DNA of 64,000 nucleotides from positions 1 to 64,000 of IMG/VR virus record IMGVR_UViG_3300036766_002289; one strand, 5' to 3'. The stretch's first letter is position 1, and every line of letters begins with the position of its first letter. The position numbers and the translations under genes were made by a program. The notes beneath the pieces are model-generated. The model had not been told where the DNA came from. It did no database searches and worked only from the letters and a program-made list of their open reading frames with translations. Positions 21,124 through 26,043 of the stretch are shown here, piece after piece.

Positions 21124-21241
21124 GAGTGGGTAGCTAAAAGATTGCTTTGGCAACTTAGACAAGTAATTGTCTCCAACCCTGAAGCTTACAAGCACTAGTA
21201 TTTGAAACTAAAGAATGTTGGTTCAAGTCCAACCCCACTCG
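21124..21241 (+). ncRNA. tRNA-like RNA (UUG loop) with a permuted Y-RNA-like module in the D-loop
   Basis: acceptor GAGTGGG/CCCACTC; T arm GTTGG-TTCAAGT-CCAAC; insert CTTAGAC-aagtaatt-GTCTCCAA...CTTACAAGC. Confidence 0.75.
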
Positions 21242-21248
21242 CTTAGTA

Positions 21249-21316
21249 GCGTCCCCTAAAGGAAGAACTTACAAACAACAGGAATATGTTAAAAATAGTT
21301 CTTTAAACTTGGACGC
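21249..21316 (+). ncRNA. stand-alone Y-RNA-like RNA
   Basis: GCGTCC-CCTAA...CTTGGACGC end stem; AAGAACT/AGTTCTT helix; CTTACAAAC; T-run downstream. Confidence 0.75.
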
Positions 21317-21377
21317 AACTTTTTTTGAAAAGAACTTGACAAGGATAGGAAAAGTAGTAAGATAAGGAAGTAACGCT

Positions 21378-21501
21378 GGGGGATAAAGAAAGCTTTCGCA
21401 ACTTGGACAAGAAATTGTCCCCAACGGTTTGAGCTTACAAACTTTTAGGTAAAGAAAAGACTTTTAATCTTTTTAAATCGGTTCGACTCCGATATCCTCC
21501 A
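21378..21501 (+). ncRNA. tRNA-Lys(UUU)-like RNA with a permuted Y-like module between acceptor stem and D arm
   Basis: GGGGGAT/ATCCTCC-A; AC arm AAAGA-CTTTTAA-TCTTT; T arm ATCGG-TTCGACT-CCGAT; insert CTTGGAC..GTCCCCAA..CTTACAAAC. Confidence 0.75.
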
Positions 21502-21595
21502 CTAAGGCTTTCACTGAGCCTAGATTTTGTGTGACGGTCGCCTAGACCCAGAGCAAAACGATCAGTGATAAACGGGGTTTAAAAAGGCTGGATTA

Positions 21596-21702
21596 TGGTT
21601 GACGATAGCGGCAGATTTTACTATTTGCTGCTAAAACTTAGACAGGAAACTGTCTCCAAAAGTAGTAGCTTACAAACCGAATATAACTTTAAGATTTAAC
21701 CA
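21596..21702 (+). ncRNA. permuted Y-RNA-like RNA without a tRNA body
   Basis: TGGTTGA/TTAACCA closing stem; CTTAGAC-aggaaact-GTCTCCAA; GCTGCTA/TAGTAGC; CTTACAAAC. Confidence 0.65.
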
Positions 21703-21735
21703 AGAGACTAAATAAAATGAACAGTAGTTAAAAAT

Positions 21736-21806
21736 GGGGCTATAGTGAAGCGGGATCACGTTAGAATGGCATTCTGAAATCTGGGGTTCAAATCCCCATA
21801 GCTCCA
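21736..21806 (+). tRNA. tRNA-Ala(GGC)
   Basis: cloverleaf; G3:U70; anticodon GGC. Confidence 0.85.
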
Positions 21807-21872
21807 CTCGGGACTGTACGTTCTTTCCGCAGTTGGATATGTCGCTTGAACGGAACCAACCAGTCCTGAATT

Positions 21873-21944
21873 GTCTGGGTAGCCAAGCGGTAAGGCATCA
21901 GTCTGCAAAGCTGAATAGCGTAGGTTCAAATCCTACCCCAGACT
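21873..21944 (+). tRNA. tRNA-Cys(GCA)
   Basis: cloverleaf; TCAGT-CTGCAAA-GCTGA; U73. Confidence 0.9.
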
Positions 21945-23178: not shown

Positions 23179-23305
23179 TTTTGTCTCCAATGATGGGAAC
23201 TTACAAACAATTTGCTCAATGGTAGAGCATCAACTTTAGACGTTGAAGAGTGTTGGTTCAATTCCAACATTGTTTTCCAAAACAGTTTTCATGACTTAGA
23301 CAAAA
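23179..23305 (+). ncRNA. YrlA-like Y RNA: Ro-binding stem enclosing a tRNA-like domain
   Basis: TTTTGTCTCCAA...CTTAGACAAAA outer stem; inner AAACAAT/ATTGTTT acceptor, GCTC/GAGC D arm, TCAAC-TTTAGAC-GTTGA, GTTGG-TTCAATT-CCAAC, then TCCA. Confidence 0.8.
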
Positions 23306-23310
23306 TGAGA

Positions 23311-23403
23311 TGGCTGCTAGCTTAACGGTATGAAGCGCTTGTGAATTCGGGCTTTAAATCCTGATGAAACTTGAGAAGTAGGGTTCAACTCCTTACGTGG
23401 CCA
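23311..23403 (+). ncRNA. tRNA-like RNA with expanded anticodon arm
   Basis: TGGCTGC/GTGGCCA, GCTT/AAGC D arm, TTCAACT T loop; about 38-nt anticodon region with internal TCGGG/CCTGA hairpin. Confidence 0.6.
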
Positions 23404-23404
23404 C

Positions 23405-23481
23405 TTTCTGTCCCCCAAAGGTAAAGCTTACAAACATTACCCAAATTCAGTGTTAAACAGCTTTATAAACTTGGACAGAAA
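23405..23481 (+). ncRNA. stand-alone Y-RNA-like RNA
   Basis: TTTCTGTCC-CCCAA...CTTGGACAGAAA; TAAAGCT/AGCTTTA; CTTACAAAC; T-run. Confidence 0.75.
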
Positions 23482-23778
23482 TTTTTTTACTTCAAGATAT
23501 AAGGACAGCGCGGTAAGAAGACAGGTGATTGTGGTCTTCCTTCTGACTAGCGGGAAAAAGCGCATTTACCGAGCAAAAGTTCTCTTTCATCGGAATGACT
23601 CGGCATTAGCCAACTTTATGATAGGGCAAGCTAGTTAATATCTTGGGGTGTAAAAATGTCTGAAGCAGAGATTTTAGTGCAAAAGATTAAAGCCGCCATA
23701 CAGGCCCATAAAGACAAAGAATCAAATAAAATCAATAATTTAGTAAAGCAAATTAATAAAGTCATCCATAAATAATGC

Positions 23779-24411
23779 ATGATTAAATTTGCAGAATTCG
23801 TAAACAGAAAGCAATTTTCTGTTACAGTTGATGAATCAAGTAGATTATTAACTAAGATTAATATCAAATCTGAAGATTATTTAAATTACTTATTTGAACA
23901 TGAAGAACTTTGGGATAAAGACCCTGTAAAGGTTCTGAATGAGATTAATCCGTTTTCAGCAGGTTGGTCTGCCTTAAAAGGGGGTTTAGGAGCTATGGGC
24001 GGCAATAGAAATGCTGCTTATTATCAAAAGCTTTTAGACCAAGCTAAAACTTTGCCACCAGAGAAATTGCAACAGGCTGGTTTAACTCCAGAAGATTTAA
24101 ATGCATTAGACCAAATGCGAGCGGATTCTGCAAAACAAGGTGCCGCTGGATTCTTTGGTGGTATGAAACAAGGTTGGGAAAACAGTCGTCAGCAGCAAGT
24201 TTTAAACAAATTAAGCCAAGCATTAGGTAAAGGTGCTTATTCTCAACAAACCCAACAACAGCAGCAACAGGGTCAAAACCAACAAAGTCAGGGTCAACAA
24301 CAGCAAAGTGGTCAGCAAATGTCACAGGTTAACCCACAGGCTTTAAGACAGGTGCAAGGACATTTACAGGCTTTGAACCAAGCTATTTCTGGAATGCTTC
24401 AAGGTGGGTAA
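23779..24411 (+). CDS. Gln/Gly-rich hypothetical protein (MIKFAEF N-terminus)
   Basis: TAAATA 4 nt upstream; poly-Q C-terminus; terminator at 24432-24456. Confidence 0.65.
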   Translation: MIKFAEFVNRKQFSVTVDESSRLLTKINIKSEDYLNYLFEHEELWDKDPVKVLNEINPFSAGWSALKGGLGAMGGNRNAAYYQKLLDQAKTLPPEKLQQAGLTPEDLNALDQMRADSAKQGAAGFFGGMKQGWENSRQQQVLNKLSQALGKGAYSQQTQQQQQQGQNQQSQGQQQQSGQQMSQVNPQALRQVQGHLQALNQAISGMLQGG

Positions 24412-24501
24412 AATTTTCATCACAATAAATTAAATCCGTTGAAAAACGGATTTTTTCGTTTACATACTCAGAAATTGTAGTATCATACAGAAGTTCAATA
24501 A

Positions 24502-24531
24502 CTTGGACAGGCAACTGTCCCCAATAAGGAG
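24502..24531 (+). promoter_or_regulatory. Y-like hairpin abutting the Ro60 Shine-Dalgarno (putative autoregulatory operator)
   Basis: CTTGGAC-aggcaact-GTCCCCAA followed after 1 nt by AAGGAG; promoter TTTACA-N16-TATCAT at 24459-24486. Confidence 0.7.
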
Positions 24532-24540
24532 AATTTAAAA

Positions 24541-26043
24541 ATGGCTACCAATGAAACTGATACGCGGCTTGCTATCTTAAACACTCTGTTAACTACCCCA
24601 CACCGTAAGTTGGATCAAGTTTATCCAATTCACGCTGAAATGATTAAGCAAGACCCATTGTTCTATGGTCGTTTGGGTGCGTGGTATAACGACACTGGCG
24701 ATGTGCGTGACCATAAGGAAATGTTCATCATCAATATGTGCCTTTCTGATTTTGAAGGCCATAGGGATGCTGGCCTAGCCATGCTCCGTGAAATGCCTCC
24801 TTATCAGCTTGGTCGTGTCGTAGACTTTATTCACGGTCGTAAGGATACCAAGAAGTCTAAGGTTAAGAAGGGCGAGACTCCGCAAACTGTAGTCGAGAAC
24901 TATGGCTTATTTAAGAACATTCCGCGTTCCGTTAAGACGGAAGTGGTTCGTTATCTTCGTGAGCGTGAAGCGGAACCTGAATGGTTCGATTCTTGTGCAG
25001 TTACCGCTCGTAAGTATTTGAAGCGTTTATACGCTCTTATGCATATTTCCCCCAATGAGCGTGCGCAGAAGATTCTCTTTGAAGATTTGCCTCCAGAAGA
25101 TTCTAAGCTGTTCGCAGTGAAGGAACTCTTTAAGGCTAAGACGCCAGCGGAACAAGCTAAGACGATCATGGCACATAAGATTCCTTACCGTATTGCTTCT
25201 ACGGTAGTGTCTGCTATGACTCCGACTGTTCTTTTGGCACTTATTGAAGTTATGTCCGATCAGGAGTTAATCAATAACCTTGGTTCTCTCCGTAAGCGTG
25301 GTGCGTTTGAGAATAACGACCTTAAGGCTTTGATCGAAAAGAAGCTTGAAAAGGCAAAGACTGGCAAGCGAGTTTCTGCACTCAAGGCTTCTGAAGCTGT
25401 GAAGTCGGCTGGCGTCGATGAATCTACTGTCAAGGCATTGGAAGCTGTAGCTGACGCTCAGCTTAAGAAGAAGGGTCGTATTAAGCGTTCGACTGCCTTG
25501 TTGATTGACAAGAGCGGTTCCATGAACCAGGCTATTGAGTTAGGTAAGCAGATTGGCGCAACCATTTCTGCTATCATGGATGCCGATTTGTTTGTGTATG
25601 CTTTCGACACGATGGCGTATCCAATCAAGTCCCAAGGCACAGACCTGGCGTCTTGGGACAAGGCGTTAAGGGGTATTAATGCTGGTGGTGGTACCGCTTG
25701 TGGTGTTGCTCTTGAGTATATGATCCGTAATAAGCAACTTGCGGAAAATATCATCGTCATCACTGATGAAGGTGAAAATGGTACTCCAGCATTCGTGCCG
25801 ACTTTGAAGAAGTATATAGCAGAATTGAAGACTACGCCTTCTGTCTGCTTTGTTAAGACCACAGGTGCGTCTAATTTGCTTGAGACGCAAATGCAGCGTG
25901 AAGGTATGAATTGCGATGCGTGGCAGTTCAGTGGGGATTATTACAGCCTGCCTAACTTAATCCCTTACCTTTCCAAACCATCGAAGGTTGATCTTTTGAT
26001 GGAAATTATGTGTTACGAAATGCCTGTCCGCAAGACGGCATAA
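24541..26043 (+). CDS. Ro60/Rsr-like TROVE + vWA domain protein
   Basis: 500 aa; helical N-terminal region ([21 protein letters not shown]) and C-terminal vWA with MIDAS DKSGS, GGT, ITDEGEN; Y-like RNAs adjacent. Confidence 0.8.

Follow-up and report, generated by a model that had tools for sequence, protein, structure and literature searches.

Positions 21,124 to 26,043 of IMG/VR virus record IMGVR_UViG_3300036766_002289 probably encode a Ro60 ribonucleoprotein (RNP) cassette, consisting of a gene for a divergent Ro60, eight small RNAs that share one putative protein-binding handle, and a ninth copy of the handle in the Ro mRNA leader that would mimic an operator. The stretch analyzed here, referred to as the window, covers 64 kb (positions 1 to 64,000 of the record) and contains 37 tRNA genes. 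All eight RNA units lie on the + strand, 1.1-3.4 kb upstream of the Ro gene. An earlier note, made from the sequence alone, had proposed a Y-RNA-like array next to a Ro60/TROVE gene, and our data support its interpretation as essentially right, though incomplete.

The anatomy of the handle was derived by folding the eight units and comparing ~70 further copies from related phages, with numbering from the G of GUCY. The handle runs through helix 1, a conserved internal loop and an 8-base-pair (bp) helix 2 into NUACAAAC. Helix 1 is composed of GUCY/RGAC plus at least two further pairs. On the 5' strand, G0 U1 C2 Y3 is followed by C4 M5 N6 A7 Y8 N9, by helix 2 at positions 10-17 (ending in A15 R16 C17) and by N18 U A C A A A C25, while on the 3' strand G-13 Y U-11 precedes the remainder of helix 2, R-5 A-4 C-3 U-2 Y-1 and R0 G A C3. 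The loop positions C4, A7, A-4, C-3 and U-2 are invariant in all 57 in-register copies, among which UACAAAC is invariant or nearly so. In most copies, the G of GUCY lies 17 nucleotides (nt) 5' of the C of CNUACAAAC. Helix 2 gives way to single-stranded NUAC and then to a short helix 3, in which AAAC pairs with a downstream GUUU. The second helix described in the earlier note is real, and its last base is the C of CTTACAAAC. The element CUUACAAAC, which had been put forward as a second conserved element, is conserved but is not simply free: the third helix is built on its AAAC, and in unit 7 this helix serves as the acceptor stem of an entire tRNA.

The eight units are listed below, some with scores from R1, a covariance model of the module built from copies of the hairpin type.

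21124-21241, + strand: unit 1, a tRNA-like RNA with a 7-bp acceptor stem, a T arm and an anticodon-like arm
21249-21316, + strand: unit 2, minimal and Y-RNA-like, with helix 1 formed by the 5' and 3' ends, then helix 2 and a mini helix 3
21378-21501, + strand: unit 3, a tRNA-like RNA with acceptor, D, anticodon-like and T arms (R1 63.2 bits)
21596-21702, + strand: unit 4, a hairpin-type module with its hairpin at 21636-21657 and CTTACAAAC at 21669 (R1 68.8 bits)
22949-23078, + strand: unit 5, a tRNA-like RNA whose D loop holds the module as a 62-nt insertion (Rfam tRNA 43.1 bits, R1 58.2 bits)
23085-23155, + strand: unit 6, minimal and Y-RNA-like, with a T-run 3' of the unit
23178-23306, + strand: unit 7, Y-RNA-like helix 1 and helix 2 around a complete tRNA at 23205-23279
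23405-23481, + strand: unit 8, minimal and Y-RNA-like, with a T-run 3' of the unit

All units share the two strands that the earlier note had recognized, but they do not share a single architecture, because the order GTCYCC...CTTRGAC is found only in units 2, 6, 7 and 8. These four have a Y-RNA-like topology, with GTCYCC at the 5' side and CTTRGAC at the 3' side, and the handle closes the RNA ends. Units 2, 6 and 8 are 68-77 nt long and Y-RNA-shaped, their ends pairing as helix 1, and each is followed by a T-run (at 21320-21326 for unit 2). In unit 7, the handle surrounds a tRNA that scores 67.6 bits with Rfam tRNA, above threshold, and has an encoded CCA and, according to ARAGORN, the anticodon UAG. 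Its body is of class I, unlike that of bacterial tRNA-Leu, and its 5' end falls inside the conserved element, between CTTAC and AAAC. Units 1, 3, 4 and 5 and the leader copy are circularly permuted: CTTRGAC comes first, helix 1 is capped by a loop of 4-7 nt, and helix 2 opens toward the remainder of the RNA. The tRNA-like bodies of units 1 and 5 carry the entire module in place of a D loop. The minimum free energy fold of unit 1 is a cloverleaf with the module in the D arm (hairpin at 21153-21174, CTTACAAGC at 21185); the unit gives a partial Rfam tRNA match of 30 bits and 60.3 bits with R1. The module hairpin of unit 3 (21401-21422) is placed between the acceptor strand and the D arm. Unit 4 forms a ~107-nt structure closed by TGGTTGA/TTAACCA, which is not tRNA-like and has tRNA-Ala and tRNA-Cys 3' of it.

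Motif counts in the window agree with this arrangement, and the motif coordinates given in the earlier note are all correct. CTTACAARC occurs nine times, eight of them between 21185 and 23427 on the + strand and one elsewhere (shuffles: mean 1.4, maximum 5), and ACTTRGAC occurs 13 times, nine of them between 21153 and 24501 (shuffles: mean 2.9, maximum 7). GTCYCC by itself is not enriched in the window (25 against 28 expected). The composite GTCYCC-N11-CTTACAARC, however, is found seven times and never in 100 shuffles, and unit 1 provides an eighth composite copy with a spacer of 10 nt. The C/T and G/A pair, which the earlier note had described as covarying, matches in all nine copies, the eight units and the leader. 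GTCC faces GGAC in units 2, 3, 5, 8 and the leader, and GTCT faces AGAC in units 1, 4, 6 and 7; both states are present in both topologies, and random assignment with the given margins would produce perfect pairing with a probability of 1/126.

Covariation extends well beyond this one pair. In an independent MAFFT alignment of 35 hairpin-type copies, 92.7% of the cells are paired, compared with 74% in column shuffles and 34-49% with slid partners. Two-sided changes occur at 11 of the 13 pairs in these copies, and none of 500 shuffles reaches the observed covariation score. Given 16 copies that nest a tRNA, RNAalifold arrives unaided at a 9-bp helix 1, at helix 2 and at the D, anticodon and T arms, with compensatory changes at 26 of 30 pairs. 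Helix 1 in relatives also appears as GUUC/GAAC, GUGC/GCAC, GCCC/GGGC, AUCC/GGAU and ACUC/GAGU. In a mutual-information scan of all loop and helix-2 positions, the top pairs are exactly the helix-2 register, and no base pairs are seen within the internal loop. The internal loop is therefore conserved in sequence and not by pairing.

Orthologous units are found in the related locus L002 (94% identical), where the acceptor stems are kept through multiple compensatory changes (GAGTGGG/CCCACTC of unit 1 is GGCCAAG/CTTGGCC in L002) while the 'anticodons' differ. This pattern indicates that the tRNA-like bodies are maintained structures, not decoders. It also bears on the idea that the array consists of tRNA pseudogenes, recently duplicated or in decay, or of a functionless repeat family. 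Several units are indeed tRNA-derived with non-canonical features, and the array has been invaded by a homing endonuclease. Such an origin is nevertheless highly improbable in our view, as compensatory changes keep the helices, including the acceptor stems, between orthologous units, and the module is conserved across phages in which Ro is just 55-60% identical.

As the earlier note had proposed, the units could be captured in a covariance model. Searching the whole window on both strands with filters off, R1 finds matches only between 21142 and 24533, so that none of the other 33 tRNA genes of the window carries the module. One further match, at 23134-23208, pairs across two units with identical helix-1 sequences, taking its 3' strand from unit 6 and its 5' strand from unit 7; we rejected it as an artefact because its 'loop' is 45 nt long and contains a T-run. 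The restricted distribution argues against reading the paired flanks as processing or termination structures of a tRNA operon, such as RNase III-type stems or intrinsic terminators, with no dedicated RNP. This reading would account for the T-runs after units 2, 6 and 8, for the real tRNA that is flanked in unit 7, and for the interleaving of the units with ordinary tRNA genes. On the other hand, copies of the hairpin type lie within tRNA-like bodies and lack a T-run, a processing stem needs neither an invariant loop nor a 17-nt spacing to NUACAAAC, and both the leader copy and the strict linkage to one Ro clade would be left unexplained. We therefore consider it quite unlikely.

The protein at the end of the array is, according to its predicted structure, a divergent Ro60/Rsr in which a HEAT-repeat ring is closed by a C-terminal vWA domain.

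24541-26043, + strand: Ro60/Rsr-type protein of 500 amino acids (aa), HEAT-repeat ring and vWA domain with intact MIDAS motif

The AlphaFold2 model has a predicted local distance difference test score (pLDDT) of 83.8 and a predicted template modeling score of 0.72. When it was compared with the PDB by Foldseek, ranks 1-10 were all Ro60/Rsr (human or Xenopus Ro60, D. radiodurans Rsr and phiLo Ro60), with template modeling (TM) scores of 0.56-0.67 over the full length and E-values down to 2e-11; below rank 10, only vWA domains appear, at TM ~0.25. The toroid-plus-vWA fold expected of a Ro60 is thus recovered, and the lack of a TROVE toroid, which the earlier note had named as grounds for refutation, does not apply. 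Sequence comparisons point the same way. The best PDB match by phmmer is the Ro60 of Thermus phage phiLo (E=5.5e-5), a profile of 24 homologs reaches human RO60 (E=3.2e-4), and the MIDAS residues D323, S325, S327, T385 and D409 are invariant in these 24 homologs. The protein matches phrog_850, annotated 'RNA-binding protein', and some of its close homologs have a precomputed PF25045 match; NCBIfam gives no match for the protein itself. The closest GenBank phage record is that of the uncultured phage LR756511.1, with a Ro 72% identical to that of the window.

The handle is found almost only beside one Ro clade, in eight IMG/VR phage contigs and in Zavarzinella formosa. In IMG/VR phage contigs with a Ro 55-94% identical to that of the window, the Ro gene is preceded by arrays that range from 5 to more than 14 units. 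The covariance model detects nothing significant in loci with a Ro at most 47% identical, although L015 (Ro 45% identical) has variant units defined by motif. An exact scan of 2.9 million IMG/VR contigs with a 26-nt degenerate motif gave 33 matches in 11 contigs, 30 of them in the eight Ro-encoding contigs. The singleton matches in L024, L029 and L032 lack a partner strand and were dismissed as chance. In 596 Gb of prokaryotic genome contigs, the exact motif matches 56 stretches, roughly equal to a rough estimate of the chance expectation, and most of these look like chance matches. The covariance model confirms modules in four short contigs of metagenome-assembled genomes (MAGs), L035, L051, L066 and L087, and tblastn identifies Ro homologs in L051, L079 and L088. 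L079 is a short contig of a Pirellulaceae MAG. For the Ro homolog of a Planctomycetia MAG, the contig starts 190 nt 5' of the gene, and its upstream context is uninformative.

L088 comes from the cultured planctomycete Zavarzinella formosa DSM 19928 (NZ_JH636440.1), with a Ro 58% identical to that of the window. Three handle-bearing RNAs lie upstream of its Ro gene at ~7150-7560 on the - strand, one nesting a tRNA (52.5 bits) and two YrlA-like. With Rfam YrlA, one of the units of YrlA layout reaches 42 bits (E=8e-7), whereas the gathering score is 69. A Pfam scan of the neighbors of the Zavarzinella Ro gene gave nothing useful. This locus points to a common origin of the phage cassette and the rsr loci of planctomycetes, and it hints at the host range of these phages. 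The divergent, expanded Y RNA family proposed in the earlier note thus stands as a covarying, Ro-linked module that is connected to YrlA through its relatives, but half of the window units are not Y-RNA-shaped.

The ninth copy of the module lies on the leader of the Ro mRNA itself.

24459-24486, + strand: promoter-like site for the Ro gene, 3' of a terminator-like hairpin at 24432-24453
24494-24540, + strand: predicted Ro mRNA leader with the ninth module copy at 24494-24533, helix 1 at 24501-24522, and helix 1 plus the loop invariants within 24501-24525

The copy directly abuts the Shine-Dalgarno (SD) sequence AAGGAG at 24526-24531, with the ATG at 24541. R1, which was trained without the leader copy, scores it at 31.1 bits (E=1.7e-5). 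In autogenous translational operators, such as those of ribosomal proteins, T4 RegA and gp32, the leader mimics the protein's primary RNA site beside the SD sequence. The likeness of the Ro leader to these operators is one of functional analogy only. To our knowledge, autoregulation of Ro60 by leader mimicry has not been described.

Several observations weigh against a Ro60 RNP cassette. Pfam reports no TROVE match for the 500-aa protein, only VWA_2 and VWA_CoxE below cutoff. An Rfam search of 20900-24600 at E<=10 returns only tRNA matches and no Y_RNA or YrlA. The GNCGAA/CGAA motif, which is used to recognize bacterial and phiLo Y RNAs, is absent from every unit. Only L002 and L003 keep the leader copy, which is lost from loci further away in relatedness and has a weak helix 2. 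A Pfam scan of 43 window open reading frames (ORFs) finds no RtcB, PNPase, RNA-repair gene or other known Ro partner. Finally, a 77-aa protein that travels with the cassette could be the real handle binder.

22630-22863, + strand: 77-aa ORF conserved with the cassette, with a promoter at 22583-22610

In that case, a different protein, the 77-aa product or a host factor, would recognize the handle, and Ro would be no more than a neighbor in the same cassette. Of 19 related loci, 17 have the 77-aa ORF, which in each case lies within the RNA array a short way upstream of Ro, and its C-terminus T-x-R-P-x-A-x-[FWY]-G is invariant. It is also encoded in the Pirellulaceae contig L079. The missing canonical CGAA of bacterial Y RNAs would fit another binder as well. 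In Zavarzinella, however, Ro is accompanied by three handle RNAs, and the 77-aa ORF is absent from 8 kb around the Ro gene. In addition, the handle sequence is like the classical Ro-binding helix, and the leader copy sits on the Ro mRNA, not on that of the small ORF. The AlphaFold2 model of the 77-aa protein (pLDDT 86) has a beta-beta-alpha-beta-beta, beta-grasp-like fold, with no significant match to an RNA-binding fold; a PDB fold search gave no significant match at all (best E=0.19), the weak ones being beta-grasp or ubiquitin-like. Taken together, we judge recognition by a protein other than Ro to be unlikely. A Prok-JAB peptidase (30301-30753) and a ThiF/E1-like enzyme (33293-33940) are encoded 7-10 kb downstream of the 77-aa ORF, and for this reason the 77-aa protein might be a ubiquitin-like modifier.

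If Y RNA/Ro60 and YrlA/Rsr are a guide, Ro in such a cassette would bind the handle made up of helix 1, loop and helix 2. The effector end would then be the part that is a tRNA or resembles one, as proposed for bacterial YrlA, and it may tether Ro to tRNA-recognizing enzymes or nucleases, act as a mimic, or have a protective role for the RNA. Termination of transcription may be a further role of the minimal units, and RNase P could free the tRNA of unit 7, leaving a two-piece handle. Excess free Ro might repress its own translation through the handle mimic on its leader. As a guess from precedents, the cassette could serve in RNA or tRNA turnover control, in RNA surveillance or in counter-defence during infection. 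A more far-reaching version, which we put forward tentatively and hold to be rather doubtful, is that the handle is a portable Ro tag that places genuine class-I tRNAs (AAAC start, encoded CCA, swapped anticodons) under Ro control. The Ro RNP would gate the maturation, stability or delivery of non-standard tRNAs or decoys, possibly against host anticodon nucleases or tRNA-directed defences, with the Ro level set by the leader mimic and the ubiquitin-like small protein as a possible partner.

The remaining features of the array and its surroundings are as follows.

21080-21108, + strand: sigma-70-like promoter, TTGACA-17-TAAGAT, ~15 nt 5' of unit 1, a consensus match only
21336-21363, + strand: sigma-70-like promoter 5' of unit 3, a consensus match
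21736-21944, + strand: ordinary tRNA genes within the array, Ala-GGC at 21736-21807 and Cys-GCA at 21873-21944
21933-22637, - strand: HNH homing-endonuclease ORF interrupting the array (phrog_559, 1e-19)
23312-23404, + strand: tRNA-like gene of atypical form, in which acceptor, D and T arms are present and the anticodon region is irregular

The cassette belongs to a very large phage. Pfam matches among the 43 window ORFs include DnaJ, dUTPase, PhoH, sigma factor, DNA ligase, RRF, JAB, ThiF, SPFH and similar families, the first six of which, together with HNH endonucleases, are phage-type genes. On one side, the HNH ORF runs into the 3' end of tRNA-Cys, and on the other it borders on the start of the 77-aa ORF; in the matching interval of the close relative L002, several extra units are present. 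The intergenic stretches 21505-21595 (by eye, kept in L002) and 22864-22948 contain hairpins on the + strand, possibly additional small RNAs or attenuators. A 210-aa ORF (23779-24411, +) that separates unit 8 from the Ro promoter has a long glutamine-rich low-complexity tail and no homolog even in the 94%-related locus L002. About 400 nt 3' of the Ro gene, a ribosome recycling factor homolog (26463-26999, +; Pfam RRF, 5e-23) is kept in L002.

The tRNAs within the handle form one paralogous family, represented by 23205-23279 in the window and by 14-16 orthologous positions in L002-L015, with a conserved D arm, an acceptor stem starting with AAAC (A1-U72) and a mostly encoded CCA. Their anticodons vary widely (UAG, CCA, CGA, UGU, ACG, UGA, AUU, UAU, CAU, UCC, AAG, UUC and UCA), and those with UAG have a class-I body, unlike tRNA-Leu. 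The atypical tRNA-like gene between units 7 and 8 is syntenic in L002 (5546-5635) and L003 (5930-6031). ARAGORN assigns no anticodon to it, and inspection by eye gives an anticodon loop of 8 nt (CUUUAAAU); for one tRNA of L003, the anticodon call is 4 nt long. Some Y-type units in L002 (3411-3743) and L003 (from ~3690) enclose ~290-nt inserts, which have no Rfam match and no counterpart unit in the window. The start of these inserts resembles 23S rRNA sequence (...CUAAGGUAGCGA...). In L004, from a related phage, positions 1-139 and 944-1131 match group I introns (Rfam, 50-67 bits) in the tRNA region upstream of its Ro cassette.

A strongly covarying Ro-type handle with invariant loop nucleotides is well suited to binding and structural work. 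The family offers natural 'domain swaps', in which the handle either stands alone or is joined to tRNA mimics, permuted YrlA-type domains or complete tRNAs, and which could reveal the function of the effector end and bear on the role of the tRNA-like domain in bacterial Y RNAs and of phage Ro60. The leader copy is a candidate autoregulatory operator. In addition, the family links the tRNA arsenals of huge phages with Ro-based RNA surveillance or counter-defence, and the handle shared with the cultured Zavarzinella formosa provides a tractable cellular system.

Among known systems, phage Ro60 proteins offer close parallels. In Thermus phage phiLo, phiRo60 was shown experimentally to bind two phage Y-like RNAs (Yrl1 and Yrl2) and host PNPase (Hu et al. 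2025, PMC12135203; PDB 9l5y, 9kop). The window likewise has a phage-encoded Ro60 of 500 aa with the same fold and Y-like RNAs just upstream. Identity in the structural alignment, however, is ~15%, and the phiLo RNAs, two in number, were identified by a CGAA bulge and are not tRNA-linked, with no leader copy described. Bas63 gp130 is Ro60-like, adjoins tRNA genes and counters a defence system (bioRxiv 10.1101/2024.10.10.617714). Like the window protein, it is a Ro60-like phage protein beside a tRNA block, and its authors suggested that some of the 'tRNAs' may be Y RNAs, but that work defined no RNA module. Jumbo phages have been noted to carry TROVE proteins alongside RNA-repair genes (PMC7824862).

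The resemblance to metazoan Y RNAs lies in the Ro-binding helix. In the X. laevis structure 1yvp, the Ro-binding 5' strand is GGUCCGA with a bulge, comparable to GUCY-CC-NA / ACUU-RGAC in the window, and helix 1 with GUCC.../...CUUGGAC resembles the Ro-contacted GGUCCGA helix (PMC4201824). The conserved bulged helix GGUCCGA/UUGACC of metazoan Y RNAs is formed by the RNA ends; the window helix is similar in sequence, but the ends form it in only four of the eight units. As in metazoan Y RNAs, a stem, an internal loop and a stem follow each other, and the minimal units end in a 3' U-run. Unlike metazoan Y RNAs (RF00019), the window units have no Rfam Y_RNA match, have bacterial-type promoters and bear tRNA or tRNA-like heads, and the window protein is 12-16% identical to metazoan Ro60. 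Targeted full-text literature searches found no description of the outer helix and loop, of NUACAAAC in the place of GNCGAA, of the high copy number, of the modular handle, of the permuted hairpin or of the leader copy.

The nearest relative is YrlA/Rsr. More than 250 bacteria as well as mycobacteriophages have Ro60 genes with adjacent Y RNA-like RNAs, YrlA mimics tRNA, and M. smegmatis YrlA is cut by RNase P and gains CCA (Chen et al. 2014, PMC4201824). As in YrlA/Rsr (RF02553; PMC4201824), the window RNAs are encoded on the strand of a Ro60 gene and within a few kb upstream of it, one stem is proposed for Ro binding, and the distal part mimics tRNA. Units of L002, L003, L007, L009, L011 and Zavarzinella follow the YrlA order of T arm, acceptor stem-loop and D arm and score 26-42 bits on RF02553; those of the phage relatives (for example, L002 2201-2339 and L011 4434-4573) score 26-28 bits, below the gathering score of 69. 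In contrast to YrlA, the permuted tRNA-like domain is missing from all eight units of the window, and NUACAAAC stands in place of GNCGAA in the covariance-model alignment of the Zavarzinella unit. The window family also adds a highly conserved outer helix and internal loop, reaches a high copy number, with 8 to more than 14 units per genome where YrlA has 1-2 RNAs, and uses its handle as a capped hairpin inside tRNA-like bodies, around a canonical tRNA and as a leader copy. Given the sub-threshold RF02553 matches in relatives, we regard the family as a divergent branch of the YrlA world that is associated with planctomycetes. The cassette is not categorically new, but an expanded, modular variant of the bacterial and phage Ro60/YrlA system.

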